Sequence record: OQ790161.1
Length of the DNA: 64,000 bases
Direction: 5' to 3' (one strand)
Part shown: positions 7,284 to 58,208 of the stretch, piece by piece
Position numbering within the stretch: position 1 is the stretch's first letter
How the letters are laid out: each line of letters starts with the position of its first letter
Made by a program: the position numbers and the translations under genes
The notes under the pieces: generated by a model
What the model saw: the letters and a program-made list of their open reading frames with translations, nothing else
The model's database searches: none
What the model was told of the DNA's origin: nothing

Positions 7284-7314
7284 GCCCCTGCCTTCGGGCA
7301 GGGGCCTTATGCCG
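7284..7314 (+). terminator. GC hairpin with TTATGCCG tail
   Basis: GCCCCTGCC-TTCG-GGCAGGGGC-CTTATGCCG. Confidence 0.75.
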
Positions 7315-7387
7315 TAAAATCTTCGACCTATCATGTGTACTAAGCCGATACGGCTTTGATTTTTTCGCATTGAATAGGACTGCCCAC

Positions 7388-8680
7388 ATGAGTACCCCGA
7401 TGTCCTTGTTCCAGCGCCTGCTGAACTTGGTCGAAACTTCCGCAGAGGCAGCTGGTCTGTACTTTGTAGTTGCCACCGACGAAGGCCTGCGTGCACTGAA
7501 GCTGGAGGAAATCCTCAAGTCAGTTCCTGCTCCCACCTCCACTGTGATCACCCATGAGGTGGTCCGTGAACCGGAGCCGGAAAACCCCTTGCTCCAGCAA
7601 TTGGTCCAGCAGTTGAGCGAGCACAAAGAACAACTGGACCTGCTCTCCGATGAAATCAGCGATGTCCAATCGGATCTGCTCAAGCGGTTGAAGAAAGCGT
7701 CCAAGGAACCCTTCGTTCCCGATGAGTCGGTGAGCCTGGGTCTGGATGCTCTGCGCGATGGCGCAGTGGATGCAGAGAACGTGGCCGTGGGTCTGTGCGC
7801 GGGTGCAGAGTTGGATGGTCAAGGCAATACCCTGATCGGTCCGCATGCTGGCACCGAATGCAAGGGCGTGTTGCGTGATGTCACGGCCGTGGGTTATTCG
7901 GCACTGGCTGAAGCCCAAGACGATCTGACCAACGTCACCGCACTGGGCGCCTACAGCGATGCCACTGGCGACAACCAAGTCATCTTGGGTAACGCCCACA
8001 CCACCACCTACTCCCATTCTGCCCCGCACCGTCGGGCGGACGTGCGCGATATGCATGAGCCGGAAGTGAATTCGCTGGGTCTGGACTTCGTGTTGGGTAT
8101 CCGACCGCTCCAGTACCGCAACGACTTCCGTGAGCTGTACATCGACTGGGAGAACAAGCCGGTCGAACCTGAAGTGCTGCGTCCGGAACCGCAAGCTCCC
8201 ACGTTGGAGTCTGACGATCCGGCCTACCAGCCGTTGCTCATTGCCTACCGCTCCGACAAGGCGCAGTGGGACCGTGAGCATCGTGACTACGTCCTGGCTG
8301 TCCAACAGTTCCATGTCGATCTGACGCAGTGGCTGGAAGACAACAAACTTTCGCGTATCAAGCCCACCGGCGAACACGTCGGTACTCGTACGCACGTCGG
8401 CTTCAACGGAGCCGAACTGCTGGAGCTGTGCGAACGCTTCGGCGTGAACATGGCCTTCGTTCAAGACCACAAGGTCAACGGCGGCAAGGACGTACTGTCC
8501 CTGTCTGATGGTGAAATGGTCGGCGTCCTGTGGACGGCTATCCATGACCTGTACCGGAAGATGACCTCTTCGGAGTTCATCGACGAAATCGCCAGCGCGC
8601 TCTATCAGCGGCACAAAACGATCACTGAGGCCACGCAGGCACAGACGCCTGTGGGGTCTGATTTGCCGGCCCAAGACTGA
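7388..8680 (+). CDS. Tail-fibre/tailspike-related protein with short beta-helix repeats and a degenerate S74 chaperone domain
   Basis: Likely start ATG 7388 (AGGA upstream), 430 aa. GNTLIGPHAG / VTAVGYSA / VTALGAYS repeats are followed by DNQVILGN..TTTY...RADVRDM...LGLDF...IRPLQY...QDHKVNGGKDVLSL, the layout of an S74 domain. Confidence 0.7.
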   Translation: MSTPMSLFQRLLNLVETSAEAAGLYFVVATDEGLRALKLEEILKSVPAPTSTVITHEVVREPEPENPLLQQLVQQLSEHKEQLDLLSDEISDVQSDLLKRLKKASKEPFVPDESVSLGLDALRDGAVDAENVAVGLCAGAELDGQGNTLIGPHAGTECKGVLRDVTAVGYSALAEAQDDLTNVTALGAYSDATGDNQVILGNAHTTTYSHSAPHRRADVRDMHEPEVNSLGLDFVLGIRPLQYRNDFRELYIDWENKPVEPEVLRPEPQAPTLESDDPAYQPLLIAYRSDKAQWDREHRDYVLAVQQFHVDLTQWLEDNKLSRIKPTGEHVGTRTHVGFNGAELLELCERFGVNMAFVQDHKVNGGKDVLSLSDGEMVGVLWTAIHDLYRKMTSSEFIDEIASALYQRHKTITEATQAQTPVGSDLPAQD

Positions 8681-8717
8681 GTATTTTCTTACACCACTTT
8701 GACGAGGCGGATCAGAC

Positions 8718-12065: not shown

Positions 12066-12102
12066 CATAAGCGCCCCCTAGGGAAACCTAGGGGGCACTC
12101 TT
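12066..12102 (+). terminator. Hairpin preceded by CATAAG
   Basis: CATAAGC-GCCCCCTAGG-GAAA-CCTAGGGGGC-ACTCTTT. Confidence 0.7.
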
Positions 12103-19713: not shown

Positions 19714-19757
19714 GCATAGCGTAGAGAGGAGCTTCGGCTCCTCTCTATTTTATGTCC
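19714..19757 (+). terminator. Hairpin with GCATAG / TTTTATGTC flanks
   Basis: GCATAGCG-TAGAGAGGAGC-TTCG-GCTCCTCTCTA-TTTTATGTC. Confidence 0.85.
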
Positions 19758-20886: not shown

Positions 20887-20890
20887 CAAT

Positions 20891-20920
20891 GGGGCTCCTT
20901 CGGGAGCCCCAGTTATGTCG
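20891..20920 (+). terminator. Hairpin with TTATGTCG tail
   Basis: GGGGCTCC-TTCG-GGAGCCCC-AGTTATGTCG. Confidence 0.75.
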
Positions 20921-22516: not shown

Positions 22517-23008
22517 ATGAAGCTGGATGATGTTTTCCAAACAGCAGGCGATCACCAGCTTTCTGGTTTTGCATGGGGCGCAAGCGCTGTCGTGTTGTAT
22601 AACACGCTGGTTGCTCCGCCCCACGCCATCGACGTAAGTCACACCGGCACCCAAGCCCGTGACAAGTTGCGTGCATTGCCCACCTCCACGTTGTTGGCAG
22701 TGCTTTCCCGTCGGGTGTTGCTGGAAGGAGATGCGGTGGAATTCATCGGTACTGCTCGCGAGCAGGCTGATGGTGTTCCACCCACGGTTCCCACCAACAC
22801 GCGTCGGGTCAATCCGATGGCGATGGTTCTGATGGCTTTCCTGCTGATGATCTGCGGCGTGCTCACCTTCGGCGCATATCAAGGTAAGACGGATCCGGAA
22901 ACACTCAAGGTCATTATCACGGCCCTGGTGGATCTGTCCAAGGACGCCTACAAGGACCCCAACCAACCGGCAGCTCCCAAGCCTGCCGAGGAAACGGTAA
23001 CGCCTTAA
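22517..23008 (+). CDS. Hypothetical membrane protein
   Basis: 163 aa with one hydrophobic segment, MAMVLMAFLLMICGVLTFGAY. Confidence 0.6.
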   Translation: MKLDDVFQTAGDHQLSGFAWGASAVVLYNTLVAPPHAIDVSHTGTQARDKLRALPTSTLLAVLSRRVLLEGDAVEFIGTAREQADGVPPTVPTNTRRVNPMAMVLMAFLLMICGVLTFGAYQGKTDPETLKVIITALVDLSKDAYKDPNQPAAPKPAEETVTP

Positions 23009-23009
23009 G

Positions 23010-23050
23010 CGACATAGACCCCCGCCCCAAAAGGGCGGGGGCTTATGCTG
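23010..23050. terminator. Bidirectional hairpin between convergent genes
   Basis: CGACATAGA-CCCCCGCCC-CAAAA-GGGCGGGGG-CTTATGCTG. Confidence 0.8.
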
Positions 23051-23051: not shown

Positions 23052-23660
23052 TTAGATGGCTTGCAACTGGACGTGCGGTGTCTTCTTCATGGCCTTGGCC
23101 ACCTGCGAGAGGATGGCAGTGGGCTCACGGTAAGTACCGTACTCCTTCATGTACTCCGACTCGATACGACGCTTGGCTTCCATGCGCTTCTTGCTCGGCC
23201 GCCAGCCGAAGATGCCCCAGGCACGCACAGCGGTGAACATGACGCCACGTTCGAACCAATGAACGCCAGCCACCTTCATCGCATCGCGGAAGATATGGTC
23301 AGCTTGCTTGCGGGAGATCTCATACGGGATCTCATCGCGGAACATGGTCTTGGTTTCGCACAGGATGTCATGCAGCACGGCGGCTTGACCGTAGCGGCCC
23401 CACGGTGGCAGGATCCACCACAGCGGCTTGGGCACACTGGCACCGTCAGTCAGGAAGCCAGCCGGCACGTAGCCCCACACGTTGCGTTCTGCTTCGCTGA
23501 GGTAGTACCGGAAGGATTTGGTGACCTTGAAGTAGGTCTTCCCCAACACTTTGGAGGCCACCTCATCTTTCTCCACCGACAAGTCGGTATCGAAGTTGGT
23601 GAACGCCTCAGCTTCCTTGAGCAAGGTCGCCGTGGGGACATACGGGGTGTTGATGATCAT
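23052..23660 (-). CDS. DUF1353-family protein
   Basis: Likely start ATG 23660, 202 aa; VPAGFLTDGASVPKPLWWILPPWGRYGQAAVLHDILC...ADHIF..AM signature. Confidence 0.85.
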   Translation of the reverse strand: MIINTPYVPTATLLKEAEAFTNFDTDLSVEKDEVASKVLGKTYFKVTKSFRYYLSEAERNVWGYVPAGFLTDGASVPKPLWWILPPWGRYGQAAVLHDILCETKTMFRDEIPYEISRKQADHIFRDAMKVAGVHWFERGVMFTAVRAWGIFGWRPSKKRMEAKRRIESEYMKEYGTYREPTAILSQVAKAMKKTPHVQLQAI

Positions 23661-23685
23661 TGAATGCTCCACGGAATAAAAGAAC

Positions 23686-23707
23686 CGGGGGAGGTTGCCC
23701 TCCCCCG
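23686..23707 (-). terminator. Hairpin downstream of the Hint-domain gene
   Basis: CGGGGGAGG-TTGC-CCTCCCCCG, with T-rich sequence following on the minus strand. Confidence 0.7.
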
Positions 23708-30675: not shown

Positions 30676-31920
30676 ATGTCTTATCAGCTCGTTGCGGCCA
30701 AGGCGCGCTCCAAGGGATTGGATGCAATCTGGAGTGACGTTGACATCTCGGCGATGAAGATCAGCGCGCTGTTTGCCAACTACACCAGCGTGTGGATGAC
30801 GCTCTCCCATCCGGCCCTGACCAAGAACGTCTACCTCAAGTTGGACGACGTGCGTGAGCAGGTGTCCTCCAAGTATCACAACCTCACCATCCCGCAGTGG
30901 CTGACGGCCATCGGCGATCTGGCGCTGCCCACCAACGTGGCGCTGCCGGATTTGACCCTGCGCAAAGTGCGGTGCACCGATGTGTGGCGTGCAGGCTACG
31001 ATGTCAAACCCTTCGACCGTACCCGCCATCCCGATGCGCAGATCCCCTACGGTGAAAAGGACGACTTGCTGTTGTCCAAGGAAGGGGTGGACTTCCGCAT
31101 TTATCACCGCTTCTCGCTGGTGAGCGTCAATGGCTTCTTCCACCGCACTGGTGCCTCTGAGCACGGCTTGCAGGTGGTTGATGGTGGACGTACCGGGCGA
31201 CTGGGCAACGACAACCAGGTGAGCCTGCATTCGTTCTACGGCGTGGGTGCGTTGGACTTCATTCCAATCACCGCCGACATGATCTACAAGACCACCGCTG
31301 ATGGCAAGCTGGCCGATCGCGCCTATGTCGAACTTCCCTACAACGTGGAAGACAAGACGGTGCTGCTGGTCATCGGTGGTTACCTGCATGTGCTGGACGA
31401 AGTCTACACGCGCATTGGTCCGCGCTCGCTGCGCATCAACATGAACCAGCTGGCTCTGGCCGAGCGTTACTTCGAAAGCTGGAAGCTGCTGGACCTGACT
31501 TCGCTGCCACTGACCCTGAACAAGGACAACCCCGGCCATATCTCTCCCGAGGAGTTGTATTCGGATGAAGTGATCAAGGCGTACCTGAGTGTCAGTCAGT
31601 CGTTTGTGATCGTGGTCAACACCAAGGACTTCTACGTGCGTCGCCACCCGGTGGTGAACTCGCAGATTCCGGGCCGTTACGAAGTGCCGGCCGGCACCGA
31701 GCGGCTGCCGCTGTTTGGTCCGTGGGGTAAGGTGTGCGATTACGCGATCTTCCCGGACTGGGGCGTGAACGTTCTGGCGTGCAGTGAGAACATGCGCAAG
31801 CGCTACATGTTCCGTACCACCGACTGGCGTGGCCGCCGGACCATCGATGATTCCCAGTACGCCTATCGTCCGTGGGACTGGGCCAATGGTCATCTGTTGG
31901 AAATGGGCCGAGTTGCCTAA
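30676..31920 (+). CDS. Conserved phiKZ-like virion structural protein
   Basis: 414 aa with GAGGAG RBS; LVSVNGFFH and LLVIGGYLH motifs recalled from this phage group. Confidence 0.65.
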   Translation: MSYQLVAAKARSKGLDAIWSDVDISAMKISALFANYTSVWMTLSHPALTKNVYLKLDDVREQVSSKYHNLTIPQWLTAIGDLALPTNVALPDLTLRKVRCTDVWRAGYDVKPFDRTRHPDAQIPYGEKDDLLLSKEGVDFRIYHRFSLVSVNGFFHRTGASEHGLQVVDGGRTGRLGNDNQVSLHSFYGVGALDFIPITADMIYKTTADGKLADRAYVELPYNVEDKTVLLVIGGYLHVLDEVYTRIGPRSLRINMNQLALAERYFESWKLLDLTSLPLTLNKDNPGHISPEELYSDEVIKAYLSVSQSFVIVVNTKDFYVRRHPVVNSQIPGRYEVPAGTERLPLFGPWGKVCDYAIFPDWGVNVLACSENMRKRYMFRTTDWRGRRTIDDSQYAYRPWDWANGHLLEMGRVA

Positions 31921-31924: not shown

Positions 31925-31970
31925 CAGCATAAGAGCCCCTCCCAAACGGGAGGGGCTCTGTTTTATGCCG
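31925..31970. terminator. Bidirectional hairpin with CAGCATAA / TTTTATGCCG flanks
   Basis: CAGCATA-AGAGCCCCTCCC-AAAC-GGGAGGGGCTCT-GTTTTATGCCG. Confidence 0.85.
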
Positions 31971-32358
31971 GTCGCACCATGAAGTCGCGCTGCGGTGCAT
32001 TGCTGTAGGAGGCAATGAATCCCAACGCGGCGTACAGTGCCTTGGCACCGTGGTTGTGGGGCATGACATACAACGTACGGATGTTGCGTTCGTTGATGTA
32101 CTGCCGACCCAACCCCAGTCCACGGAACTCCGGGACGATGTACAGGTTGGACAGATGGAAGTTGCGCTTGTCCCACCGACCGAAACCGGCAAGCTGTCCG
32201 TCCACGTAAATGCCTTCCACGGTCTGCTCACAGAACATGGAGTAGGTCATGTAGCGAACGTCTTGATCGACATCCCGATTGATCTTGCACTGTTCCAGAT
32301 GCAAGAACCGGGCCAGGTCATCCCACGTGATGGGACGGAATTCGATTACTCGTTGCAC
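31963..32358 (-). CDS. GNAT-family acetyltransferase
   Basis: Probable GTG start at 32358, 131 aa; motif A LYIVPEFRGLGLG and motif B NHGAKALYAALGF. Confidence 0.85.
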   Translation of the reverse strand: MQRVIEFRPITWDDLARFLHLEQCKINRDVDQDVRYMTYSMFCEQTVEGIYVDGQLAGFGRWDKRNFHLSNLYIVPEFRGLGLGRQYINERNIRTLYVMPHNHGAKALYAALGFIASYSNAPQRDFMVRPA

Positions 32359-37868: not shown

Positions 37869-38906
37869 ATGTCCAACAACAAACCCGTTCCGCATTTCAT
37901 CCGCCAGCCGGCGTCGCTGATCGTGCTCCAGCAGCGTCTGGATGTCCAGACCCAGTTCAGCAATGCCCTGCTGGAACTGATCGCCACCGAGTTCCCGGCC
38001 ATCAAGGACAAGGCAGGCAAGCTGTTCGAAGGTCTCAACCAAGCCCAGCAGGGCCTGGGCTCCCTGAACGGCGAACTGATCCTCAAGGGTCATGGTCCGC
38101 GCGGTGCGCTGGTCTCGCAGACCCTCACCACCAAGAAGGAAAACGAAGCCTTCCTGGCCAAGACCGTACAGCCGGCCGAAAACCCGATCGACCCGCAGGT
38201 GCTGATCAGCACGCTGGAATCTTACCTGGCCGTGGACGGCGGGGAGAAGGGTCGCCAGTTCGCCATGCCCGATGAAGTCATGTACGGCCAGCAGCTGCGC
38301 GACGGTGCCAAGATCGCTGATGCTGATCTGATGGAGCAGCCCGACGGCATCTACCTGGTCGCCAACGACAAGGGCAGCAGCTACACTCTGAAGGTCACCG
38401 TCGATGGCGGTGCGCTGGTGTTCTCCCCGCTGACCGGCCCCACGCTGGTGACCTGGAGCGAGATCGAGCGCGGTTGGGTGCAGCACACTGCCTGGGCCTA
38501 CGGCGATGGCGAGAAGACCCTCCAGGCGCTGGCTGCGTTCTTCGAGAAGACCAACGTGCGCGATGCCACGGTCGGCGAACTCAAGACCCTGGAAAGCACC
38601 CTGCGCAAGATGCCCAAGGCGAAGCTGGACGCACTGGCACAGACCACCGGCGAGCAGCAGATCGACATCAACCTGCCGATCAACGAGCTGTTCAAGATCC
38701 GCTTCACCGTCGAGAACGACCCGGTGATCATCTCCGCTCGCGATGACGTCCAGTGGGAAAACCTGACCATCTACACCCGTCGCCGCCTGTTCCGTGACAC
38801 CGTGGCCCGTGTCAAGGAAGCCAACGCCGCCTCGGCACCCAAGGCCGAAGCCAAGACCGAAACCAAGCCGGTCAAGAAGGCCGCCGCCAAGAAGGCTGCG
38901 CGCTAA
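37869..38906 (+). CDS. Hypothetical protein with Lys/Ala-rich C-terminal tail
   Basis: Start ATG 37869, 345 aa, strongly C-ending codons; ends KPVKKAAAKKAAR. Confidence 0.8.
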   Translation: MSNNKPVPHFIRQPASLIVLQQRLDVQTQFSNALLELIATEFPAIKDKAGKLFEGLNQAQQGLGSLNGELILKGHGPRGALVSQTLTTKKENEAFLAKTVQPAENPIDPQVLISTLESYLAVDGGEKGRQFAMPDEVMYGQQLRDGAKIADADLMEQPDGIYLVANDKGSSYTLKVTVDGGALVFSPLTGPTLVTWSEIERGWVQHTAWAYGDGEKTLQALAAFFEKTNVRDATVGELKTLESTLRKMPKAKLDALAQTTGEQQIDINLPINELFKIRFTVENDPVIISARDDVQWENLTIYTRRRLFRDTVARVKEANAASAPKAEAKTETKPVKKAAAKKAAR

Positions 38907-39391
38907 TGAGCTTCCTCCGGGTAGCTCTCACCCCTGCGGAGTTGCGGGCTTACAAGCCCGCGCTCCCGCAAGCTCTGTCCAGCAGCATTCCGAAGCCGCT
39001 GATCGAAAAGATCAAAGGTACCGGACACGTCACGCCTGATTTTGCGTTTGCAGTGGCGGTGGATCTGCTCGGCCTGGAGTACGTCACCAAGTCGGTGACG
39101 GCAACGCCCACGTTGCTGGCCACGTGGGTGGGGTTGATCGAAAGCCAAGGCTGGGGTGACAACCTGCGTCCGATGGACTTGCAGATCTCCCTGCTGGCCA
39201 ATGCGATCAAGGCCAACGCCAAGCTGTCCAATCCACCGGATGACCTGCGTTTGGAAGGGATCATCTACAACCTGATCGTGGAAGCCGCCAAGGGCGACCA
39301 GAGCGTCAATGATCAGTTGGTGGAAAACCTGATCTCGGGCAAAGGCATGACCATGCCGTGGGCACTGGTCATCCGAGCTGTGAAAGCATAA
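38906..39391 (+). CDS. Hypothetical protein
   Basis: 161 aa, coupled to the previous gene by TAATG. Confidence 0.75.
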   Translation: MSFLRVALTPAELRAYKPALPQALSSSIPKPLIEKIKGTGHVTPDFAFAVAVDLLGLEYVTKSVTATPTLLATWVGLIESQGWGDNLRPMDLQISLLANAIKANAKLSNPPDDLRLEGIIYNLIVEAAKGDQSVNDQLVENLISGKGMTMPWALVIRAVKA

Positions 39392-39393: not shown

Positions 39394-39434
39394 CAGCATA
39401 TCACCCCCTCCCGAAAGGGAGGGGGCTTATGCCG
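39394..39434. terminator. Bidirectional hairpin with CAGCATA / CTTATGCCG flanks
   Basis: CCCCCTCCC-GAAA-GGGAGGGGG. Confidence 0.85.
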
Positions 39435-39438: not shown

Positions 39439-40047
39439 TTAGCTTTGCAGCTGTTGGATCAACTGTTGCAGTTGGCGAATCTTCTCCGCTTGGGCGTCGA
39501 TCGTTTCCTGCTGGGACAATACCGTTGCCCGATCGGTGGTGCGGTTGGTGATAGCCGCTTGACGTGCTGCTTCCTGCGTCGCGTGCTGGTCAGCACTCAC
39601 CACCCCAGCACTCGGAGCAATGAATTCAGCCACCACCGCTTCCACACCAGTGATGTCTGACGACACCGAAGCCAGAGAAGCCTTCAGATGAGTCAGATCC
39701 ACGCCATCGGGCAACGCACCCAACTCAACAGTGCATACGACGCGCTTATATGCAACATTGGTCAGGTCAGGGAACTTCTCGATGTACGTGTCGGGAACAT
39801 GGATCACAGCCGAGACCGGAGACTGCAAGGTCACGATATGTGCCCCTGCCGCCTTGTCTGCTTCGTACATTTCCCGCGTCAAGCCTTTGCTGGCGTAGAA
39901 GCGGGTAAAGGCATCTTCACCACGTTCGATGAAGTCCTCAAAGCTACGAACGGCGATGGCTTCGTAAAGCGCATCGCTCACAGTGGTCCAGGGAGTCTTG
40001 AGCGTGTAAACACCCTTGGCGTGCAAGGGAGGCGTGTTACGTGCCAT
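39439..40047 (-). CDS. Conserved phiKZ-like protein, probably virion-associated
   Basis: 202 aa; PP....GVY.LK.PW...VPDTYI..FPD...ELGALP motif string. Confidence 0.65.
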   Translation of the reverse strand: MARNTPPLHAKGVYTLKTPWTTVSDALYEAIAVRSFEDFIERGEDAFTRFYASKGLTREMYEADKAAGAHIVTLQSPVSAVIHVPDTYIEKFPDLTNVAYKRVVCTVELGALPDGVDLTHLKASLASVSSDITGVEAVVAEFIAPSAGVVSADQHATQEAARQAAITNRTTDRATVLSQQETIDAQAEKIRQLQQLIQQLQS

Positions 40048-44307: not shown

Positions 44308-44757
44308 ATGTACAGCACGACGAGTCAAGACCAGCGTGCAACAAGTCTGGTAAGGACGGTAATGGAGTTCATTCTGTCCAAGTTCGTCAATCAGCACACC
44401 CGGCGCATCATCTTCGTGACCAGTCTGTTCACCCGGACTTCTCGCTTGGATCGACTCCAGCAGTCTGCCGTGGCAAAGCTGAATCAAGTGATGGTACTGG
44501 CTTCGAATGACAGTTCGTTGCCACTGGCCTCGCGGCTCCACAACCTCGTTTGGCGAGGTACTGACCTGAACAGCGTGTTGTCGGCCGAAGTCATGCATGG
44601 CGTACCCGTCATGACTGAAGCGCAGTTGCGCGATCTCTCGACGCGAGTCGTTGATACGGCTCCGAAGTACCTCCGCTACGGCGCAAAGCCTGACATGATT
44701 CGAGACGTCTTTCGTCTTCTGACTCAGTCCGGCAAAATGGTGCCCGCGACCGCCTGA
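44308..44757 (+). CDS. Hypothetical protein
   Basis: 149 aa, GAGGT RBS, followed by a terminator. Confidence 0.7.
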   Translation: MYSTTSQDQRATSLVRTVMEFILSKFVNQHTRRIIFVTSLFTRTSRLDRLQQSAVAKLNQVMVLASNDSSLPLASRLHNLVWRGTDLNSVLSAEVMHGVPVMTEAQLRDLSTRVVDTAPKYLRYGAKPDMIRDVFRLLTQSGKMVPATA

Positions 44758-44773
44758 TCGCAGAACAATGCGA

Positions 44774-44816
44774 GCATAGAGCCCCCGCCCAAAAGGCGGG
44801 GGCTCGCTTTATGCCG
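44774..44816. terminator. Bidirectional hairpin with GCATA / TTTATGCCG flanks
   Basis: GAGCCCCCGCC-CAAAA-GGCGGGGGCTC. Confidence 0.85.
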
Positions 44817-44823: not shown

Positions 44824-45648
44824 TCAGATGTGCGGCTTGACCAGTTCCACGTTCTGGTCCACGGTGCGGATGAACTCATCCACGCGGTGACGCAGCACGC
44901 CGTAGAACTCGACGTGTTCGGCCACGTCGTAGATCACCTTGGAGAGCTTGTCGATGGTCACCGAGGAGAACTGGTAGACTTCGGCGGACTTGTCTTCGGC
45001 CATGCGGGCCGAGAGCAGACGCAGCAGTTCGCTCAGTTCGGGGACCTTCTTCTGGACGCGTTCGAAGTTGCCGTTGGCGTACAGGGTGTTGAGCTTCTTG
45101 ACCTGGTTGTTCAATTCCACCCAGTCGCCCTGACGCTTGAACAGCTCACCGTAGACGGCCGGCTTGTCTTCTGCCTTGTCGGGGAAATAGCGGTCCAGTT
45201 GTTTCTGGATGCCTTCGATCTTGGGTTCACTCAGGCCGGGGATGCGCAGGGTGTTGGTCAGGCTCTTGAGCGACTCGGGATCGGCCACGCGCTGACCCAG
45301 CCAAGCGTTGAACGGTTCCAGCACGTCCTTGTAGAGGTTGTCCATTTCCTCGGCACCCTTGATCAGGGTGTTGCCGTACTCGGCCAGGGTACCCTTGAAG
45401 CCGGGCGGGGCCACCGCTTGCAGACCACGCAGTTCGCTGTAGTTGGCACGGGAGGCATTCAGAGCCAGCCAGCCCAGGTTCTTGACCGAGAAGAAATCGC
45501 CCAGCGATTGCAGCACGGTCTTGGTCAGGAATTCGCTGGCTTTGTCGAAGAAGGAAGGCAGACGCGAAACCGCGGCGGCAGCTGCGTTACCACCTGCGAC
45601 CGCCTCCATGGAGATGATGTCGCGAGCGTGGCGAAGTTGGTTCAACAT
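44824..45648 (-). CDS. Probable head/virion protein with SME processing motif
   Basis: Start ATG 45648 after GGAG, 274 aa; ISME-A near the N-terminus fits the S/A/G-x-E cleavage motif of phiKZ-type prohead proteases. Confidence 0.6.
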   Translation of the reverse strand: MLNQLRHARDIISMEAVAGGNAAAAAVSRLPSFFDKASEFLTKTVLQSLGDFFSVKNLGWLALNASRANYSELRGLQAVAPPGFKGTLAEYGNTLIKGAEEMDNLYKDVLEPFNAWLGQRVADPESLKSLTNTLRIPGLSEPKIEGIQKQLDRYFPDKAEDKPAVYGELFKRQGDWVELNNQVKKLNTLYANGNFERVQKKVPELSELLRLLSARMAEDKSAEVYQFSSVTIDKLSKVIYDVAEHVEFYGVLRHRVDEFIRTVDQNVELVKPHI

Positions 45649-48365: not shown

Positions 48366-48722
48366 ATGAAACCCCAACTGTTTCCCTCGACCAACCCTGT
48401 CACGGTGGGGGTCTACGCTGTGCTGGCTGGCATGGATGTCAGCTGTGCTTGGCGTTTCGTGCAGTCCTACTGTGAACCTGATAGCTACAACATCAATGAC
48501 CACATTCGTGAGGTCAACAAGTACTGGCGTGAACAACTGGCCAACGTCCGCATGGTCGATACCATGGACGCGCGCTCCAACCTGATCGACCAGGTGGAGT
48601 TGCAGGACTGGATGAGGTTGTTCAGCCGCTTTGTTGCCCCGATCGTGGTTTCCTTGGATCTGCCGCAGGAATTGCCGCAGTCCACGGGCTTCATTCCGGT
48701 CTTCGGTCTGGCCCCAGCATAA
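48366..48722 (+). CDS. Hypothetical protein
   Basis: 118 aa ORF between two hairpins. Confidence 0.7.
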   Translation: MKPQLFPSTNPVTVGVYAVLAGMDVSCAWRFVQSYCEPDSYNINDHIREVNKYWREQLANVRMVDTMDARSNLIDQVELQDWMRLFSRFVAPIVVSLDLPQELPQSTGFIPVFGLAPA

Positions 48723-48774
48723 GACACACAAGCCTCCCTCTGACTTTGCACGGGTCAGAGGGAGGATCTTGTGT
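48716..48774 (+). terminator. Long hairpin upstream of the RNAP subunit gene
   Basis: CCTCCCTCTGAC-9 nt-GTCAGAGGGAGG, extended by ACACAAG/CTTGTGT. Confidence 0.65.
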
Positions 48775-48795
48775 ACGTCATTTGGAATTATGCAC

Positions 48796-49461
48796 ATGAG
48801 CGCTCGTAAAGCGGCTACGGCCGAATGCCTGAAGTGGATCGAAAAGATGGTCCCCGGTGGGCAGGCAGTGAAAGACATGGAAGCCGTTTTGAACGCGCTC
48901 AGTGATGAGCAGTTCGACGCTTACATTGATGCCTTGGATAAGGATGAGGAGATTCTCTCCATCGCCATCCCCAACCTGGGCACGGACAAGCTGGAAATGG
49001 AGCGCCTGTTGGCGCTGGGTCCGGAGTTGGACCATGAGTTCTTCGAACAGCTCTGGCTGACCGACTCCAAGACCGGTGTGACTTATCTCACCCCGGAGAA
49101 GTACCTGATCTTGCTGCTGCCGCTGCGTCGTCAGCAACAGATGCTCTCCAAGAAGATCTCCATTCCCGACAACAACAACCACGTCGATGAACTCACCGGT
49201 CAGGTGACCGGCGCCTCCAAGGGCGCAAGCCTGTCGGGTCCGGAAATCCAGATCCTGCGCTCGCAGGGCTTGGACCGTCCGATCCTGGAGGCCATCAAGG
49301 TCCGCGGTGGCGATGAGAAGGCGTACCGCCAGATCACCCGCGAGATCATCGAAACCGGTGGTGCCAACATCGACAGTGCACTGGCCGCAGGTACGCGTGT
49401 CAAGGGGACCCAGACCTTGAGCGATCTGTTGCTGGGCATGCACCTGAAGAACAACCTGTAA
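48796..49461 (+). CDS. Virion RNA polymerase beta subunit, C-terminal fragment (phiKZ gp149-like)
   Basis: DELTGQVTGASKGASLSGPE..IL...G....LE.IKVRGGD..AY..I..TG aligns by eye with the bacterial RpoB C-terminal region (TQQPxGGKAQ..GEME..L.A.GA...LQE..TVKSDD). Confidence 0.8.
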   Translation: MSARKAATAECLKWIEKMVPGGQAVKDMEAVLNALSDEQFDAYIDALDKDEEILSIAIPNLGTDKLEMERLLALGPELDHEFFEQLWLTDSKTGVTYLTPEKYLILLLPLRRQQQMLSKKISIPDNNNHVDELTGQVTGASKGASLSGPEIQILRSQGLDRPILEAIKVRGGDEKAYRQITREIIETGGANIDSALAAGTRVKGTQTLSDLLLGMHLKNNL

Positions 49462-49470
49462 GGGGACTCC

Positions 49471-50025: not shown

Positions 50026-50028
50026 GCC

Positions 50029-50865
50029 ATGAGCAACGATCGTGGTTCACGCGTCAAGGATCACCGTCCAGAGTCGGTGGTGTACGTCGAGCTCGATGCG
50101 TACCTGGACACCCGTCTGGCGGCGCTGGGAGCAATCTCACCCAAGGCAGCCACCGACTGCTCTCAGGACCCGGCCTATTTTGATCGGGTGATCGATGACT
50201 TCGAATCGATCTGTGGCGTCACGCGCGAGGCGTTCCGCAATGCGTACTCGCTACGCGACGAAGAGTTCCTGCGCGCATCGGTCATCACCGAGATTCCGTT
50301 CATCTTGGATGATCTGGTGCGCAAGCTGGAAGCGGAGACCGTCGATACCCCGTTCCTGTCACGGGTGATCGTGGAAGTCAACACGTATCCGTACAAGCTG
50401 GACAAGGAAACCCTCAATGCCCTGAGCCTGGCTGTGATGTCCCGTGCGGGCATCGAGACGGAGGTGCGGTGTGTGTCCATCCCGCTGGAGCGATTGACGC
50501 CTACGTTCTGTAAGGAGCGTTACGGCGGCCTGATCCTGTACAACTTCCATGACTGGATGAAGCATCACCTGACGGCCTTTGAAAAGGTCAAGATGCCCAC
50601 GGTCACGGTGATGGCACCGGCACTGTACCGCGACACCGTTCCTTCTGAAGATGCCTTCTCGGGTGAGGGCATCTCCAAGCACATCACCGGCTTCCAGTTG
50701 TCTGAAGTGGGGTGCGTGGAACTGTTCTCGCTGTCGCTGCTGCCGGCGGCCAATTTTTCCATGGTGCGCGTGCCGGGCCATTACAAGCCCAAGCCGGCTC
50801 CGGTGGTTCCCAAGGAAGAAATGCCCGTTCCCACACCGGGTCACCAAGAGTTCAAGATCCTGTAA
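50029..50865 (+). CDS. Conserved phiKZ-like hypothetical protein (possible degenerate HAD fold)
   Basis: 278 aa; VYVELDAYLDTRL N-terminal motif. Confidence 0.65.
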   Translation: MSNDRGSRVKDHRPESVVYVELDAYLDTRLAALGAISPKAATDCSQDPAYFDRVIDDFESICGVTREAFRNAYSLRDEEFLRASVITEIPFILDDLVRKLEAETVDTPFLSRVIVEVNTYPYKLDKETLNALSLAVMSRAGIETEVRCVSIPLERLTPTFCKERYGGLILYNFHDWMKHHLTAFEKVKMPTVTVMAPALYRDTVPSEDAFSGEGISKHITGFQLSEVGCVELFSLSLLPAANFSMVRVPGHYKPKPAPVVPKEEMPVPTPGHQEFKIL

Positions 50866-50868
50866 GAA

Positions 50869-50905
50869 CGGCATAGACCCCCGCCCGTTGGGGCGGGGGC
50901 TTATG
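50869..50905. terminator. Bidirectional hairpin with CGGCATAG / CTTATG flanks
   Basis: CCCCCGCCC-GTTG-GGGCGGGGG. Confidence 0.8.
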
Positions 50906-50909
50906 GACA

Positions 50910-51419
50910 TTACTCGCCTTGACCGTTGCGTTCCATCAGCTCGTCGAAGGTGGTGGAATCCACACCGACCTGCATTTCGTCGGGTACGGTATCCACCGGC
51001 GGCAGATCGGCAGCATCGGAGATCGAGGGACGCTCGCGGGTTGCCTGGCCTGCAATCGGATCCACGCGCATGGCGCTGGTACCCAGCTGCTGGATGACGC
51101 GCTGAACCGTTTCGGCAGCCAGCTTGTCCACCGCAGAGATCTTCTCTTTGACGCCGGTGAGCTTGTTCTTGGCAGCGGCTGCTTCCAATTCCTTCAGGTT
51201 GGATTGAAAGACCTTACGATCTTCCGGATCCACCGGCATCTCACCGCCGTTGTTGTTCAGATCGATCGCAATCTGGCGCAACCGGATGCGACGGGCCAGA
51301 TCCAAGGTCTGGTCATCGGTCAACAGCGGCACCTGATCCAGACGCGGCGACGTCGGTTGCAGGATCTGATCAAAACCGTTGGGGCCGTCAGTCGCCAACG
51401 GCAGTTTTTCGTCGCTCAT
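50910..51419 (-). CDS. Hypothetical protein
   Basis: 169 aa, AGGAG RBS. Confidence 0.75.
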   Translation of the reverse strand: MSDEKLPLATDGPNGFDQILQPTSPRLDQVPLLTDDQTLDLARRIRLRQIAIDLNNNGGEMPVDPEDRKVFQSNLKELEAAAAKNKLTGVKEKISAVDKLAAETVQRVIQQLGTSAMRVDPIAGQATRERPSISDAADLPPVDTVPDEMQVGVDSTTFDELMERNGQGE

Positions 51420-51433
51420 GGCAACTCCTATCT

Positions 51434-51503
51434 AAAAATTATGTAGGCCTATATTATTCAGGGGAGCAGCCTTTAGTAAACGCAAGCGCCTATTAAAAAT
51501 TAC
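51434..51503 (+). promoter_or_regulatory. AT-rich divergent promoter region with phiKZ early/middle-like motifs
   Basis: AAAAATTAC (51495-51503) fits the reported middle motif AAanntTAC; TATATTAT (51450-51457) is one mismatch from the early motif TATATTAC; AAAAATTAT at 51434. Confidence 0.5.
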
Positions 51504-51532
51504 TGATCGCCCTTAACATAGAAGAGCCCTCA

Positions 51533-52078: not shown

Positions 52079-52123
52079 CATCCAATTGCCCGGTCCGCCA
52101 CCGGGTTACAAAGAGAGGCTACA

Positions 52124-53391: not shown

Positions 53392-53477
53392 GGACAACAA
53401 CAGTTGTCTTGACGTTCCTCTTCTAGGCGACATTGAGCGCCAGATCCAACTGGCGCTTTCCCGCCAAAGTGAATCCC

Positions 53478-54104
53478 ATGTCCACCACCATCGAACCCCT
53501 GTCGCCTGATGCCCGGCCCGTTCCGGAAAACGACGGCATTGACCACATCAACATCTACTCCCACGCCCGTACGGCGTTGGGTCAACTGGCCACCAACTTC
53601 GCACATCTACCCTTGCGTCATCCGCGTTACGGCTTCTTCGCATCCATGGAGGCCTACTGGTACTGGATCAAGACCGGCAAGCAGCACGACTCCCTGCGTC
53701 GCCTGTACGGGGCCACGGCCAAGACTGCTGGCATTCGTCTCAATCCGGTGATGATGCCCGAAGAGCAGTTCGTCAACGAAATCTGCGACGGCCTGAAACT
53801 CAAGGTCGTGCAGAACCAGAAGTTGATGGAGGCGTTGAAGAAGTCGACCCTGCCCATTCGACACTACTACGTCTACGGCACCAACCCTCCGGTTGTCAAG
53901 GAGCCGCGCAACAACCTGTGGCTCTGGACCTGCCTGGAGAGCATCCGCAAGTCGCTCAAGGAGAACCGTCCGCTCTTCTTGACCGACGGTACGCCGGTCA
54001 TTGCTGATCCGATCAAGGAACCGCCGGAGAATCCGATCCCGGAAGACATCCAGCGCTACATTCCTCGTGAAGGCAGCGACGACGTCAACAACGCCGACTA
54101 CTGA
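53478..54104 (+). CDS. NADAR-like (T4 gp30.3-like) protein
   Basis: Start ATG 53478, 208 aa. LATNFAHLP...FASMEAYW..IK...LYGATAK.AG...QNQKLMEALKKS..PIRHYY resembles the NADAR pattern LSNF...F.S.E....K....G..A...G...QN.....L..; family assignment from memory. Confidence 0.55.
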   Translation: MSTTIEPLSPDARPVPENDGIDHINIYSHARTALGQLATNFAHLPLRHPRYGFFASMEAYWYWIKTGKQHDSLRRLYGATAKTAGIRLNPVMMPEEQFVNEICDGLKLKVVQNQKLMEALKKSTLPIRHYYVYGTNPPVVKEPRNNLWLWTCLESIRKSLKENRPLFLTDGTPVIADPIKEPPENPIPEDIQRYIPREGSDDVNNADY

Positions 54105-54152
54105 CCATAAGACCCCCTGCCTTCGGGCAGGGGGCTTGTGCCGTTTCTTTTT
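54105..54152 (+). terminator. Intrinsic terminator with CCATAAG / CTTGTGCCG flanks
   Basis: CCCCCTGCC-TTCG-GGCAGGGGG-CTTGTGCCG-TTTCTTTTT. Confidence 0.85.
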
Positions 54153-54201
54153 GTCTCTTCAGCCCAGCGCAAAGGTATGATGACTCTTAAGGTGGAACGC
54201 C

Positions 54202-55725
54202 ATGGGCAATAATCCCAATTACGTACCGGTTACCGCTGCCAACGCACCGAAGATCAACGTCGGTAGTTCGGCGACCGGGTATAAGACTGAAAGTCTGTTG
54301 ACGAACATCATCAAGACCGAAGGCGCCAAGTACGCCAAGAAGGAAGCAGGTAAGTTCGTCAGTAACAAAGCCAGCAAGTTGATCAACGACAAGCTGGGCA
54401 AGATCGGCCTGCCCGGTGGACTGGGCGGTTCTGCACAGAACGCTGCACTGGCCGGCGCACGCTCGGCCTCTGATCAGCTCAGCGGAGTGATCGGCGGTAA
54501 ACTCTCTTCGGTACTCGGTTCGGGCATCGGTGGAAGCGTGGCCTCGTTGGCCACCAAACAGATCTCTAACCTCGCCACAGGGGCGATCACCAAAGCCACC
54601 TCGATGGTACAGGATAAACTCGGAGCGGCCGTGTCGGGCGCCCTGGGCGGTCTGGGTGGGGGTCTGCTGGCTAACACCCTGTCCAAGCTCTCTGACACCG
54701 GTACCAAGAACCTGCTGGCTGCCAAGATCGCTCCGGGCTTCTTGGAAACCGGTCCCAAGGATGAGTCGCTGACCCAAGACGTCTACGGAGTGAGTGACAA
54801 CAACATCCTCAATGGACTGGGTGAGAAAGTCTCTGGGTTGGCCAAGGATGCCTTCAATGACATCCGCAAGTCGCCGGGGCTGATTACCGACCTGACCTCG
54901 ATGATCAAGTCCGGCGGCTCCAACTTCAAGATCAGTAAGGAAGGCTTGGCCGATCGCGTGTTGGGTTCGCTCGGTGGACGCACGGGTGTATTGAACAACC
55001 TGGCCGATACCTTCAAGGATACGGTCGTTGGTGGGTTGGGTTTGCCGCCCGACATCTACTCCACGGCCATTGCGGTGATCGGTAGCAAGACCCAGCGCTT
55101 TGATGCCGGTCAGATGGACAACGCACGTCAAGTGTTCTCGTTGGTCAACCAAGTCACCAACTCCAGCCAGCTCAAGGCCTTCTTCGATGTCGGCAGTGAA
55201 TCGGCGTTGCTTTCCGGGGTGATGCGCGAGGCAATCGCGCTGGGCGTACCCGATGCCATCGACGTGCTGGTAGAAAATGCCAAGGACAGCGAGATCGCTT
55301 ACAACGCCCTGTATGCCAACATGCGGGTGGCCTGTGAGAACTCGGATCTGGACACGGTCAATCTGATGATTGAGAAGGTCGGGGTCACTCAGTTCCTGGC
55401 ACAGGTGCCGGATGCAGCGCCCGTGTTGCTCTCCAGCTACGAGTTGCCGTTGGGCACCAACAGCACCAACTACGACAACGAGTGGGCTGCTCTGAAGCTG
55501 GCGCTGGACAAGCTCAGCCCGCAGTGGGACAAGGTCGAACGCAACGGCACGATGGTCACTGACCTGACGGCCTTCACCGGCGTGAGCGATGATGCCCGCA
55601 AGCTGATGATGCGTCAGCCGGAGTATCTGGTGGCGACCTTGATCGGTGCCAACTACGCAGAATCGGTGGACCTGATCGCCGACCTGCAACAGAAGTATCC
55701 GTTGGCCCCCATCCAGTCGGCATAA
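54202..55725 (+). CDS. phiKZ-like virion structural protein
   Basis: 507 aa, Gly/Ala/Ser/Leu-rich N-terminal half, F.ETGPKD....DVY motif; GGTATG upstream. Confidence 0.65.
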   Translation: MGNNPNYVPVTAANAPKINVGSSATGYKTESLLTNIIKTEGAKYAKKEAGKFVSNKASKLINDKLGKIGLPGGLGGSAQNAALAGARSASDQLSGVIGGKLSSVLGSGIGGSVASLATKQISNLATGAITKATSMVQDKLGAAVSGALGGLGGGLLANTLSKLSDTGTKNLLAAKIAPGFLETGPKDESLTQDVYGVSDNNILNGLGEKVSGLAKDAFNDIRKSPGLITDLTSMIKSGGSNFKISKEGLADRVLGSLGGRTGVLNNLADTFKDTVVGGLGLPPDIYSTAIAVIGSKTQRFDAGQMDNARQVFSLVNQVTNSSQLKAFFDVGSESALLSGVMREAIALGVPDAIDVLVENAKDSEIAYNALYANMRVACENSDLDTVNLMIEKVGVTQFLAQVPDAAPVLLSSYELPLGTNSTNYDNEWAALKLALDKLSPQWDKVERNGTMVTDLTAFTGVSDDARKLMMRQPEYLVATLIGANYAESVDLIADLQQKYPLAPIQSA

Positions 55726-55760
55726 AAAGCCCCTCCCAAACGGGAGGGGCTTTTATGTCG
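55718..55760. terminator. Bidirectional hairpin, near-perfect 19-bp palindrome including flanks
   Basis: CGGCATAAAAAGCCCCTCCC-AAAC-GGGAGGGGCTTTTATGTCG. Confidence 0.9.
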
Positions 55761-55850
55761 TGTGTAGGAAGTCGTGTCCCTGTGTTCGACCTTTCCCGGA
55801 CCCGATGGGTCGAAGGCTTGGTGCTAGGGCGGGACACTTCTCCTACAGGA
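55757..55850. ncRNA. Candidate structured small RNA or structured 3' UTR
   Basis: Nested stems TGTAGGA/TCCTACA, GTGTCCC/GGGACAC and TTCGACC/GGTCGAA in a non-coding gap between convergent genes. Confidence 0.35.
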
Positions 55851-55871
55851 TCAGCACCGCTACGTAAAAAA

Positions 55872-58142
55872 TTAATCCGTACGATCCGTTTCGGTGGAGA
55901 TCGCATTGATGATGCGGCCCAAGGTGGTGTTACCCGCCCACATGGCCACACGTCCCGGCGACTTCCAGCTGGTCCAGTTCTGCATCTGGCGATAACGTGC
56001 CAGCTTCCAGCGACGGTTGGAGTACACCATGTCCTGCCAACTCAAACTGCCCAGTACCGCCATGTAGTCGGTAAAGGTGTTGTCATCGTCGTAGGTGCCC
56101 TTCTGTGCGTAGGAGGCAAACTCCTGACCGCGCAGTCCGCCAATCAGATCACCCACGGCCTGAGCGAACATGTCGGTGTAACCGAAGTTCGTTTGGATCG
56201 GCAGGTGCATGATCGAGGACAGATCGGTGATGGAGAAGGTGACATCGATGCCCAGTGCATCACCGTCCTGCGTCCAGCCCAGGTTACCCGTACCACGGGT
56301 GATGGACATATCGGTGATCATGCCCAGACGGATCGCATGGCGACCACGGCAGAACGCTTCACAGATGAACGGGGAGGTGTAGGAGTGCTTACCCGTGGAC
56401 AGCGGCAGTGCCGCAGCCAAGAGCATGCTCAGCGGGATGTACAGGTTCATCAGGCGCGACATGCGCGTACCGTAAGGGCTACGCAGCTTGATCGTGTACT
56501 CCGCCTTAGGCAGGTTCGCCGTGGAGCCCGACCAGGTCTTGGGGATGTCCACGAACGCGTTACCGGCCAATGCCATCAGGCCCGACATCTGCAACCCTTC
56601 CAGCGTACCGGAGACGAAGTCCTTGACGGCCCCCATCACTTGGTCCAGACCCGGCACACCCAAGTTACCGTTGGCCCAATCGAATCGAGCCGAGCGCGAA
56701 CTGGAGGAGGTCGAGTTGAATTTCTGCTGGATCTGGGATTCTTCCACCGAGGAGGAGAACGATTCGTTGGACGAACCGGAGTAGCCGACGCGGAAGGTCA
56801 CGTACTGCGCACCGTCACGACGTTCGGCTTCGAACATCGACTTCAGACTGCCCAGCCAACTTTGACCACCCTCGCCTTGACCGTCACCCATGTTGTACCA
56901 ATCACGGTTGCCGTCCGGACCCACCGACTCCACGTCGATCTGCTTGGCCGGCTCTTCACCGGTGGTCGGTGTGCCGCCCACGTTCTCGGTGCTGCCGTCA
57001 CCGGCTGCCGGTGCAGGAGCTGCCTCGCCCGTACCGCCTGCATCTGCGGTATCGGTTGCAGCGGCGGTGCCGTCCAGCTTGATGTAATTGGACTGACCAT
57101 CGGAGCGGTTGCGATCCGAGTTCAGGTACAGGTTGCGGTACTCATCGATACCTTGGGATTCGATACGCTTCAGACCACCGCCCTTGTACAACTTGTCCTT
57201 GAGCTCGTTGACAGCTTGGAACAACCCGGAGGCATCGGTGAGCGAATCCACCTTGTTCTGCAATTCGGCATTGAAGGTGTTGGCGATACGCTGTGCGCGG
57301 TTGGCAATGGCGTACACGTCCAGACCCGCAGCCTGTTGGCCCGAGCGCAAGAAGATGTCCGGCAGTACCTTGGCGTACTCTTGCAGCATTTCGTTCTGGT
57401 CACCCAGATAGCTGGAGTCCTGACCGGTGACCTTGGTCTGTGCTTCGGTCAGGGCCATCGGAATGACACCGATGTTCACCGCGATGGCATTGGCGATCGT
57501 GTTGACCGCTTGCCAGTACGGGTACATGGTCGGTTTCATGTAGTAGTACTTGGAGGCAGGCCATGCACCCAAGAACTTGATGATCTGGCCACCGAGGATA
57601 ACCGGTTGCAGTGGCAAGGCCAGCAAGAAGCCCAATGCTTTGCCTGCGGTAGCGAACACATTGCTGGTTCGGCCGGTACGCGAGAGCAACGCTGCATCGG
57701 TACTGTAGAAGTTACCGAAGAACTGGATCAGCGAGTTGTACTCGGGCACACCAAAGCGCATGACCAGATCTTGCCCCCAGTCATCGATGGCTTCGCTGTA
57801 GTAGCGACCCATACCCGCACTGGGAGTGGTGAATTCGGAATTGGGATTATCGCCCTCGGTCATGAAGCGACCGGTGGACATCATCCACTTGATACCACCT
57901 GGGGTCGTGGACCCATTGGTGGCGCCGCGGGAATAGCGCTGACTACCACCGACGCGGATGTCGGCGTAGCGGGTGAACTGGGGTGGAGCATTGATCGCGA
58001 AGTTTCCGCCCAACGTGGTGTCGGTGAACTTGTAAGCCGCCGACGTGAGGACGCGGCGTCGCTGATCGACATCGTTCAGTGCCGATTCCGGCAACAGAAA
58101 CGATTGCTGGACCCAGACGGTGTCTTTGATACGAAACGACAT
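55872..58142 (-). CDS. Baseplate (hub-type) structural protein, phiKZ gp182-like
   Basis: TTLGGNFAINAPPQFTRYADI, GMGRYYSEAIDD and RFGVPEYNSL motifs; adjacent to the tape-measure gene. Confidence 0.8.
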   Translation of the reverse strand: MSFRIKDTVWVQQSFLLPESALNDVDQRRRVLTSAAYKFTDTTLGGNFAINAPPQFTRYADIRVGGSQRYSRGATNGSTTPGGIKWMMSTGRFMTEGDNPNSEFTTPSAGMGRYYSEAIDDWGQDLVMRFGVPEYNSLIQFFGNFYSTDAALLSRTGRTSNVFATAGKALGFLLALPLQPVILGGQIIKFLGAWPASKYYYMKPTMYPYWQAVNTIANAIAVNIGVIPMALTEAQTKVTGQDSSYLGDQNEMLQEYAKVLPDIFLRSGQQAAGLDVYAIANRAQRIANTFNAELQNKVDSLTDASGLFQAVNELKDKLYKGGGLKRIESQGIDEYRNLYLNSDRNRSDGQSNYIKLDGTAAATDTADAGGTGEAAPAPAAGDGSTENVGGTPTTGEEPAKQIDVESVGPDGNRDWYNMGDGQGEGGQSWLGSLKSMFEAERRDGAQYVTFRVGYSGSSNESFSSSVEESQIQQKFNSTSSSSRSARFDWANGNLGVPGLDQVMGAVKDFVSGTLEGLQMSGLMALAGNAFVDIPKTWSGSTANLPKAEYTIKLRSPYGTRMSRLMNLYIPLSMLLAAALPLSTGKHSYTSPFICEAFCRGRHAIRLGMITDMSITRGTGNLGWTQDGDALGIDVTFSITDLSSIMHLPIQTNFGYTDMFAQAVGDLIGGLRGQEFASYAQKGTYDDDNTFTDYMAVLGSLSWQDMVYSNRRWKLARYRQMQNWTSWKSPGRVAMWAGNTTLGRIINAISTETDRTD

Positions 58143-58168
58143 TGCGAGGACCTCGTGGGTTTAGAAAG

Positions 58169-58208
58169 GCCGGGGAGGGGTTACCTCCCCGGCTCTCGTT
58201 TTATGCCG
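58169..58208 (-). terminator. Hairpin with TTTTATGCCG flank after the tape-measure gene
   Basis: GCCGGGGAGG-GGTTA-CCTCCCCGGC-TCTCGTTTTATGCCG. Confidence 0.7.

Follow-up and report, generated by a model that had tools for sequence, protein, structure and literature searches.

Intergenic hairpins with a TTATG tail in Xanthomonas phage RTH11 as probable phiKZ-type transcription terminators

What do the GC-rich hairpins do that stand between the genes of Xanthomonas phage RTH11, with stems that differ from one copy to the next and flanks, GCATA(A/G) and TTATG(C/T)CG, that do not? We analyzed them in a window of 64,000 nucleotides, positions 186001-250000 of the RTH11 record OQ790161.1 (312,199 bp, circular), and in the rest of that genome. 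An earlier note, made from the letters of the window alone, had offered two readings: a termination signal that the phage RNA polymerase recognizes by its sequence, or a combined terminator/late-promoter module in which extrusion of the hairpin exposes TATG and copies between convergent genes fire antisense transcripts. We find it very probable that the elements are factor-independent transcription terminators of a phiKZ-like jumbo phage, each composed of a GC hairpin and a yUUAUGCCGy tail, and the RTH11 set is a new Xanthomonas-phage member of the known phiKZ-type terminator family.

Hairpins and tails in the RTH11 genome

In a megablast comparison, window positions 25000-45000 match the RTH11 record at 100% identity. 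RTH11 is a phiKZ-like, nucleus-forming jumbo phage (chimallivirus), because its record annotates a tubulin (PhuZ-like), a number of split genes labeled 'RNA polymerase beta subunit', and many proteins of the virion. By tblastn its large polymerase subunit is 36% identical to phiKZ gp178, and the product of record positions 179129-180754, annotated 'hypothetical protein', is a homologue of phiKZ gp123 (32% identity, E=1e-82), the subunit with which the non-virion polymerase binds the TATG core of the promoter. Annotation and tblastn together place RTH11 among the phiKZ-like jumbo phages that encode multisubunit RNA polymerases of their own. We rebuilt the whole genome from the GenBank record (the rebuilt stretch is identical to the window) and called genes by codon usage, which gave 366 genes compared with 367 GenBank features and reproduced every annotated stop codon in the window. 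Rfam returned no family match within the window, and a literature search found no paper on RTH11.

In the whole genome we located 121 intergenic GC hairpins. The tail yTTATGCCGy accompanies 84 of them, some on one strand and some on both, for a total of 109 tails. Their position matrix has the consensus y-T-T-A-T-G-C-C-G-y, with the highest information content at T, A, T and G (1.6-2.0 bits), followed by C, C and G, and the T of TATG mostly lies 1-3 nt from the end of the stem. Hairpins inside genes have the motif at only 7 of 388 tails. A typical hairpin reads CCCCCNCCC-TTCG-GGGNGGGGG, with a stem of 9 bp, and the intergenic stem-loops have a median free energy of -20.7 kcal/mol. The stem sequences are mutually unrelated, in agreement with the earlier note.

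The repeated hairpin plus TTATGCCG signal is confirmed as real, abundant and far above chance. TTATGCCG occurs seven times in the window (0.9 expected; none of 100 shuffles reached seven), and GC hairpins with a stem of at least 7 bp are followed by TATG 11 times, compared with a shuffle mean of 0.5 (maximum 3; 20 shuffles). Perfect hairpins with stems of at least 8 bp number 139 in the whole genome and 26-33 in Markov simulations. The tail is tied to the hairpin: genome-wide, 31 of 33 TTATGCCG copies directly follow a hairpin (two are free-standing), and 52 of 61 copies of TTATGYYG lie within a few bases of a hairpin 3' end. The enrichment over background on which the earlier note had made its proposal depend is therefore present, and its remark that most copies lack a classical U-tract holds as well. 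Our scan of 38001-58000 for a hairpin followed by at least 5 T in 8 returned 12 sites where 14.7 are expected by chance, only one of them with a strong GC hairpin; T-rich tails amount to a handful in the genome, and the canonical U-tract of about 7-9 nt directly after the hairpin is absent from the elements.

Strand and gene context indicate at which level the signal works. Among loops of these two sequences, read along the coding strand, UUCG outnumbers CGAA 46 to 1 (p=7e-13). This bias argues for selection on the transcript and not on a DNA cruciform, and so speaks against the proposed extrusion of the hairpin to expose TATG. Hairpins are found at 22 of 30 convergent and 84 of 305 tandem junctions, but at only 4 of 30 divergent ones. 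In tandem context the tail is on the sense side of 49 of 90 hairpins and on the antisense side of 18 of 90, whereas at convergent junctions it is present on one strand in 17 of 26 and on the other in 23 of 26. Both sides carry it in 15 of 26 convergent versus 10 of 90 tandem hairpins (p=3e-6). The elements thus lie downstream of genes on the transcribed strand, with bidirectional copies between convergent genes. Among the 84 motif-bearing elements the tail is one-sided in 59, and 25 sites form an interrupted palindrome. The palindromic flanks are mainly two strand-specific tails on one common hairpin; such a hairpin would be bidirectional, which would explain why the palindromic flanks cluster between convergent genes. 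The TAA or TAG within CATAA or CATAG is the actual stop codon of 11 genes. We considered and rejected the left flank as a by-product of stop-codon context, as it is found at 9 of 257 stop regions without a hairpin and at 54 of 107 with one.

The elements of the window are given below in window coordinates; LucasX is a related Xanthomonas phage.

6702..6731, minus strand: CGGCATAA, then a 6-bp GC hairpin with a TTCG loop; tail motif on the minus strand only; between tandem plus-strand genes; gene 6146..6709 stops at the TAA of CGGCATAA.
7284..7314, plus strand: predicted terminator; 9-bp stem, TTCG loop, tail cTTATGCCG; between plus-strand genes 6766..7269 and 7388..8680.
12066..12096, minus strand: CATAAG, then a 10-bp stem with a GAAA loop; tail motif confined to the minus strand, with ACTCTTTGCG as the plus-strand tail; between tandem plus-strand tail protein genes.
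19714..19756, both strands: two-sided element; GCATAG, 11-bp stem, TTCG loop, TTTTATGTC; between tandem plus-strand genes.
20890..20920, plus strand: predicted terminator; 9-bp stem, TTCG loop, tail gTTATGTCG; between tandem plus-strand genes.
23010..23050, both strands: predicted bidirectional terminator; CGACATAGA, 9-bp stem, cTTATGCTG; between convergent genes 22517..23008 (plus) and 23052..23660 (minus).
23673..23707, minus strand: 9-bp hairpin with a minus-strand gene on either side; the sense (minus) strand has a weak tail variant, TTTTATTCCG.
31925..31970, both strands: predicted bidirectional terminator; 12-bp stem; between 30676..31920 (plus) and 31963..32358 (minus); the minus-strand gene stops at the TTA of the plus-strand TTATGCCG.
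39394..39434, both strands: predicted bidirectional terminator; GCATATCA, 9-bp stem, cTTATGCCG; between 38906..39391 (plus) and 39439..40047 (minus); LucasX has TTATGCCG between the corresponding convergent genes (LucasX record 290999).
44772..44816, both strands: predicted bidirectional terminator; 11-bp stem; between 44362..44757 (plus) and 44824..45648 (minus); the orthologous LucasX site has a different stem sequence and the same tail.
48718..48775, no strand assigned: variant below the motif threshold; 12-bp stem, 9-nt loop, flanks CATAAGACACACAAG and CTTGTGTAC, in which TGTG replaces TATG; gene 48366..48722 stops at the TAA of CATAA.
50869..50905, both strands: predicted terminator between convergent genes 50029..50865 (plus) and 50910..51419 (minus); strong minus-strand tail (gtcTATGCCG), partial plus-strand tail (cTTATGGAC).
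54106..54143, plus strand: predicted terminator; 9-bp stem, TTCG loop, tail cTTGTGCCG (a TGTG variant above threshold), partial left flank CCATAAGA; between tandem plus-strand genes.
55718..55760, both strands: predicted bidirectional terminator; 13-bp stem; between 54202..55725 (plus) and 55872..58142 (minus); the plus-strand gene stops at the TAA of CGGCATAA; the LucasX ortholog is nearly identical.
58169..58208, plus strand: 10-bp hairpin between two minus-strand genes; TTTTATGCCG on the plus (antisense) strand, tail CTTTCT on the minus (sense) strand.
3868-3891, 46659-46678 and 48324-48347: hairpins without the motif.

All 11 right flanks listed in the earlier note are found at their positions with the letters it gave, as are eight of its ten left flanks; of the other two, 39397 reads CATAT and the CATAA placed at 48719 starts at 48718. 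Its list of copies omitted 6702-6731, 23673-23707 and several motif-less hairpins. The variant hairpin at 48718..48775 sits inside a longer ACACAAG/CTTGTGT palindrome, just 5' of a small 'RNA polymerase beta subunit' gene (48796..49461). Some short hairpins of the genome scan are tRNA arms: ARAGORN places 13 tRNA genes in a cluster at record 73.6-76.9 kb, outside the window, where few coding genes are annotated and the feature table has no RNA-gene rows. In the annotation the tail sheath is spread over three coding genes that adjoin or overlap (record 271821-273935, minus strand); the gene may be split, may contain a frameshift or an intron, or may have been misread in sequencing.

Mapped RNA ends and related phages

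Transcript ends of phiKZ have been mapped by ONT-cappable-seq (Putzeys et al. 2024, Microlife, PMC10914365). The 61 intrinsic terminators reported there share the motif BCCYCCCCHWWDGGGRRGGBYTTATKYYGT, a stem-loop followed by a TTAT region, and six terminator regions between convergent genes are bidirectional (PMC10914365). In the phiKZ terminator table, T012/T013 and T018/T019 are pairs that read GCATAAG ... CTTATGC, the same flanks as in RTH11. In phage 201phi2-1, motif A (n=59) 'strongly resembles' the phiKZ terminator motif, and a motif B that co-occurs with it lengthens the hairpin; eight 201phi2-1 terminators were functional in a reporter in uninfected Pseudomonas, and those with two motifs were stronger (PMC11512511). 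The RTH11 elements have the same build, a GC stem-loop with a C-run in the 5' arm, a G-run in the 3' arm and a short loop, and then TTAT followed by K-Y-Y-G. The published phiKZ motif in its International Union of Pure and Applied Chemistry (IUPAC) letters matches RTH11 38 times at up to 6 mismatches (0-1 in simulations); matches to this ungapped, fixed-length pattern are limited to 38 because RTH11 stems are longer than those of phiKZ (typically 9 bp versus 7-8).

We located on NC_004629 the first 76 of the phiKZ 3' ends listed in Table S4 of the bioRxiv supplement. Hairpin and TAT tail are present at 31 of the 76, nine of which end at the last U of UUAU and 17 end 2-3 nt past it (UUAUGY, UUAUGYY), at a resolution of about 2 nt and by a method in which termination and 3' trimming or processing are indistinguishable. 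The RNA 3' ends fall 5-8 nt past the stem. These mapped ends lie inside the tail; the conserved tail is therefore the site at which the transcript ends, as would be expected of an intrinsic terminator with a substitute for the U-tract.

We next compared ten further genomes for 5-mers enriched in the 14 nt after GC hairpins. TTATG is the first or second most enriched tail 5-mer in RTH11, LucasX, Rebecca, RP31, FLC6, phiKZ and OBP. The enrichment of TTATG in the tails, and the share of TAT tails followed by G, are as follows.

RTH11 (Xanthomonas): TTATG enriched 67-fold; G after TAT in 85%.
LucasX (Xanthomonas): TTATG enriched 52-fold; G after TAT in 86%.
Rebecca (Erwinia): TTATG enriched 43-fold; G after TAT in 72%.
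RP31 (Ralstonia): TTATG enriched 40-fold; G after TAT in 84%.
FLC6 (Burkholderia): TTATG enriched 21-fold; G after TAT in 72%.
phiKZ (Pseudomonas): TTATG enriched 20-fold; G after TAT in 44%.
OBP (Pseudomonas): TTATG enriched 14-fold; G after TAT in 47%.
VP4B (Vibrio): TTATG enriched 10-fold; G after TAT in 19%; tails mostly U-rich.

The tails of PCH45, SPFM4 and AR9 are U-rich or TTATT, with G after TAT in only 34%, 11% and 8%, respectively. There are thus two tail types within the phiKZ-like phages, TTATG and a U run or TTATT. The hairpin with TTATG spans genomes of 37% to 58% GC and phages of Pseudomonas, Xanthomonas, Ralstonia, Erwinia and Burkholderia; this spread, together with the second, U-rich-tailed group, ties the signal to the phage transcription machinery and not to the host. 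At 16 RTH11 elements for which both flanking genes could be matched in LucasX, the hairpin is kept in 15 and the TATG tail in 12, and the orthologous hairpins often have a different stem sequence. The LucasX paper gives just the number of ARNold terminators, 47, with no description of a motif.

The left flank of tandem elements was considered separately. A role of the flanks in pairing with each other and lengthening the stem is disfavored: no covariation links their variable Y positions (at column +4 the pair (T,T) is never found), the spacing is often asymmetric and varies between elements, and the left flank in tandem context is independent of the right (10 elements with both versus 9.8 expected). 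Antisense-facing tails as backstops near blocks of opposite-strand genes were rejected (median distance 6.5 kb versus 4.5 kb, p=0.95). Antisense tails nevertheless occur at 20% of tandem-context hairpins, ten times background. In tandem elements the left flank may serve to end pervasive antisense transcription. Alternatively, it may extend the stem and so make sense termination more efficient, an option we keep because the 201phi2-1 reporter assay, in which two-motif terminators with longer stems terminate better (PMC11512511), hints in that direction.

Weighing the explanations

Taken together, motif, enrichment, gene-end position, strand bias of the loop, dependence on context and conservation with stem turnover are observed in RTH11 itself, whereas the formation and position of RNA 3' ends at such elements are taken, by analogy, from the transcript maps of phiKZ and 201phi2-1. 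On this basis a very stable GC-rich RNA hairpin, usually capped by UUCG, would form at the transcript end, and the conserved tail yUUAUGCCGy, 0-4 nt past the hairpin, would replace a long U run, with the RNA ending inside it. The tail would act per strand, and a hairpin with both tails (CGGCATAAG-stem-CTTATGCCG) would be a bidirectional terminator. RTH11's own polymerases presumably stop at these elements, and we infer that the non-U bases of the tail (A, G, CC) are read by the polymerase and do not merely provide a weak RNA-DNA hybrid.

Several points weigh against terminators of this kind. Termination at the RTH11 sites rests on homology, and a search for RTH11 sequencing runs gave only metagenomes with partial matches (5-18% of sampled words). 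The phiKZ 3' ends could, as said, have been trimmed or processed. The tail has only 3-4 U and ends in GCC in RTH11, for which the classical weak-hybrid release model is insufficient, and the 18 of 90 tandem hairpins with an antisense-side tail have no obvious source of antisense transcript. Finally, 201phi2-1 terminators also work with the host polymerase in the reporter, so that the elements need not be specific for the phage polymerase. With this caveat, the first reading in the earlier note, that of a sequence-specific terminator, is supported by the phiKZ motif match, the 3' ends in the TTATGYY tail, the UUCG loop at gene ends and the conservation across hosts and GC contents.

The second reading, in which the hairpin stops the upstream RNA and the adjacent TATG starts a new one, with antisense RNAs between convergent genes, draws on the phiKZ late promoter. 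That promoter is TATG, with the start at G, and is read by gp123 in the melted non-template strand; its four bases are exactly the best-conserved ones of the RTH11 tail, and the phiKZ starts P049 and P075 lie 5-8 nt beyond a terminator tail, with several others 20-50 nt downstream. P049 and P075, however, use a second TATG, and none of the 119 phiKZ start sites in rows P008-P126 begins at a terminator's own TATG, which the phiKZ 3' ends include in the finished RNA. In RTH11 the tail is commonest at convergent junctions, where no same-strand gene follows, and the two free-standing copies among 33 of TTATGCCG leave it bound to the hairpin. About 24 kb of hairpin-free intergenic DNA contains only six TATGCC, and TATG there lacks the CCG flank. 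The TATG core of a late promoter is thus present, but neither a location upstream of genes nor independence from hairpins is, and the strand bias of the loop speaks against a DNA cruciform. We hold a combined module, and with it the antisense firing from convergent copies, to be highly improbable. Should the elements instead act after transcription, as an RNA processing site, a 3'-end stabilizer or a protein-read tag (e.g. for mRNA leaving the phage nucleus), the two phiKZ 3'-end classes (...UUAU and +2/+3) could reflect trimming, to which the mapping method is blind; conserved A and G, which a simple U-tract does not need, would fit, as would the ability of both-flank elements to fold into long stems in free RNA. 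Yet in uninfected Pseudomonas, 201phi2-1 members placed between reporter genes stop transcription or sharply cut downstream expression, a distance of 5-8 nt from stem to RNA end suits the geometry of an intrinsic terminator, both strands are served alike at convergent genes, and no result of our analysis implicates a cleavage enzyme or binding protein; we consider this very unlikely. A palindrome acting in DNA, as the binding site of a dimeric protein, a cruciform, or a REP-like or mobile repeat, would account for the inverted-repeat flanks and the 25 interrupted palindromes. It has next to no likelihood in our view, given a loop orientation that matches the coding strand 46 to 1, a one-sided tail in 59 of 84 elements, variable and often asymmetric inter-flank spacing, stems too unrelated to be copies of one repeat, and a position at gene 3' ends with few copies in divergent regions.

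For the favored terminators, it is conceivable, if rather unlikely, that the tail reuses the promoter-reading beta-lobe pocket of gp123 as a sequence-specific, promoter-like pause-and-release signal in place of the U-tract. An elongating polymerase would then meet TATG past the hairpin and pause with the RNA at ...UAU and G next, and the hairpin would release the transcript at the pause or 2-3 nt later. Consistent with this, T-A-T-G are the four best-conserved tail bases, and one phiKZ 3'-end class lies exactly at ...UUAU, just before G, in the same register as the promoter. Promoter and tail also covary, in that phiKZ and 201phi2-1 have phiKZ-type late promoters and tails while AR9 combines a differing promoter (AACA-N6-TA/G) with U-rich tails, a comparison that rests on the three phages with published late-promoter data. 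The gp123 pocket residues S144, S334 and Q466 are kept in RTH11, and also in the U-rich-tailed PCH45 (alignments at 20-32% identity).

Late promoters of RTH11 were sought apart from the hairpins. A de novo search of hairpin-masked upstream regions found no clear oriented motif, with TCTATG 13 times sense and 11 times antisense. In divergent regions, hairpin-less (C)TCTATG(R) boxes face each gene (window 45649-45821 and 41808-41879, also 30540-30675 and 33846-33943; for example GTCATAGAG ... CTCTATGGG), and judged by sequence these are better candidate late promoters of the phage polymerase than the terminator tails. The earlier note was right that phiKZ late promoters have a TATG core; its statement that the non-virion polymerase needs a melted template in vitro is too strong, as Yakunina et al. 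obtained phiKZ run-off transcription from double-stranded PCR fragments and a mismatch bubble was needed only for the cryo-electron microscopy complex. One divergent intergenic region has a hairpin with TTTATGCCC (record 284941-284975), 5' of a plus-strand gene; a short 5'-leader RNA, or a small gene missing from the annotation, may terminate there.

Relation to known promoters and terminators

From the elements one can read off where transcription units should end in RTH11 and its relative LucasX, with about 84 predicted terminators, 25 of them two-sided, which standard predictors that rely on a U-tract largely miss. They correct the tempting idea of antisense promoters and sharpen a question: how a multisubunit polymerase would terminate at a tail whose core, TATG, consists of the bases of its own late promoter. 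With that promoter the RTH11 tail shares the four bases of its best-conserved part. It differs in being bound to an upstream hairpin, in the additional conserved T before and CCG after the core, and in lying at gene ends, even where no gene comes next.

Canonical bacterial intrinsic terminators likewise place a stable GC hairpin directly past the stop codon, with symmetric versions at convergent genes; the phiKZ RNAs end at the corresponding 5-8 nt past the stem, and 201phi2-1 members work with the bacterial polymerase in vivo. The RTH11 elements differ from them in having no U run and in conserved bases that include A, G and CC. The closest likeness is to the phiKZ motif and to 201phi2-1 motif A, alone or with B, from phages of the same kind, nucleus-forming and with two multisubunit polymerases. 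Shared are the GC stem of C-run and G-run, the short loop (often TTCG), the tail YTTATKYYG(T), the gene-end location and the bidirectional copies flanked by CATAA and TTATG between convergent genes. RTH11 differs in its host, Xanthomonas, and in a matched polymerase subunit only 36% identical to that of phiKZ. Its tail is fixed as GCCG where phiKZ has KYYG, consistent with genomes of 58% and 37% GC, respectively.

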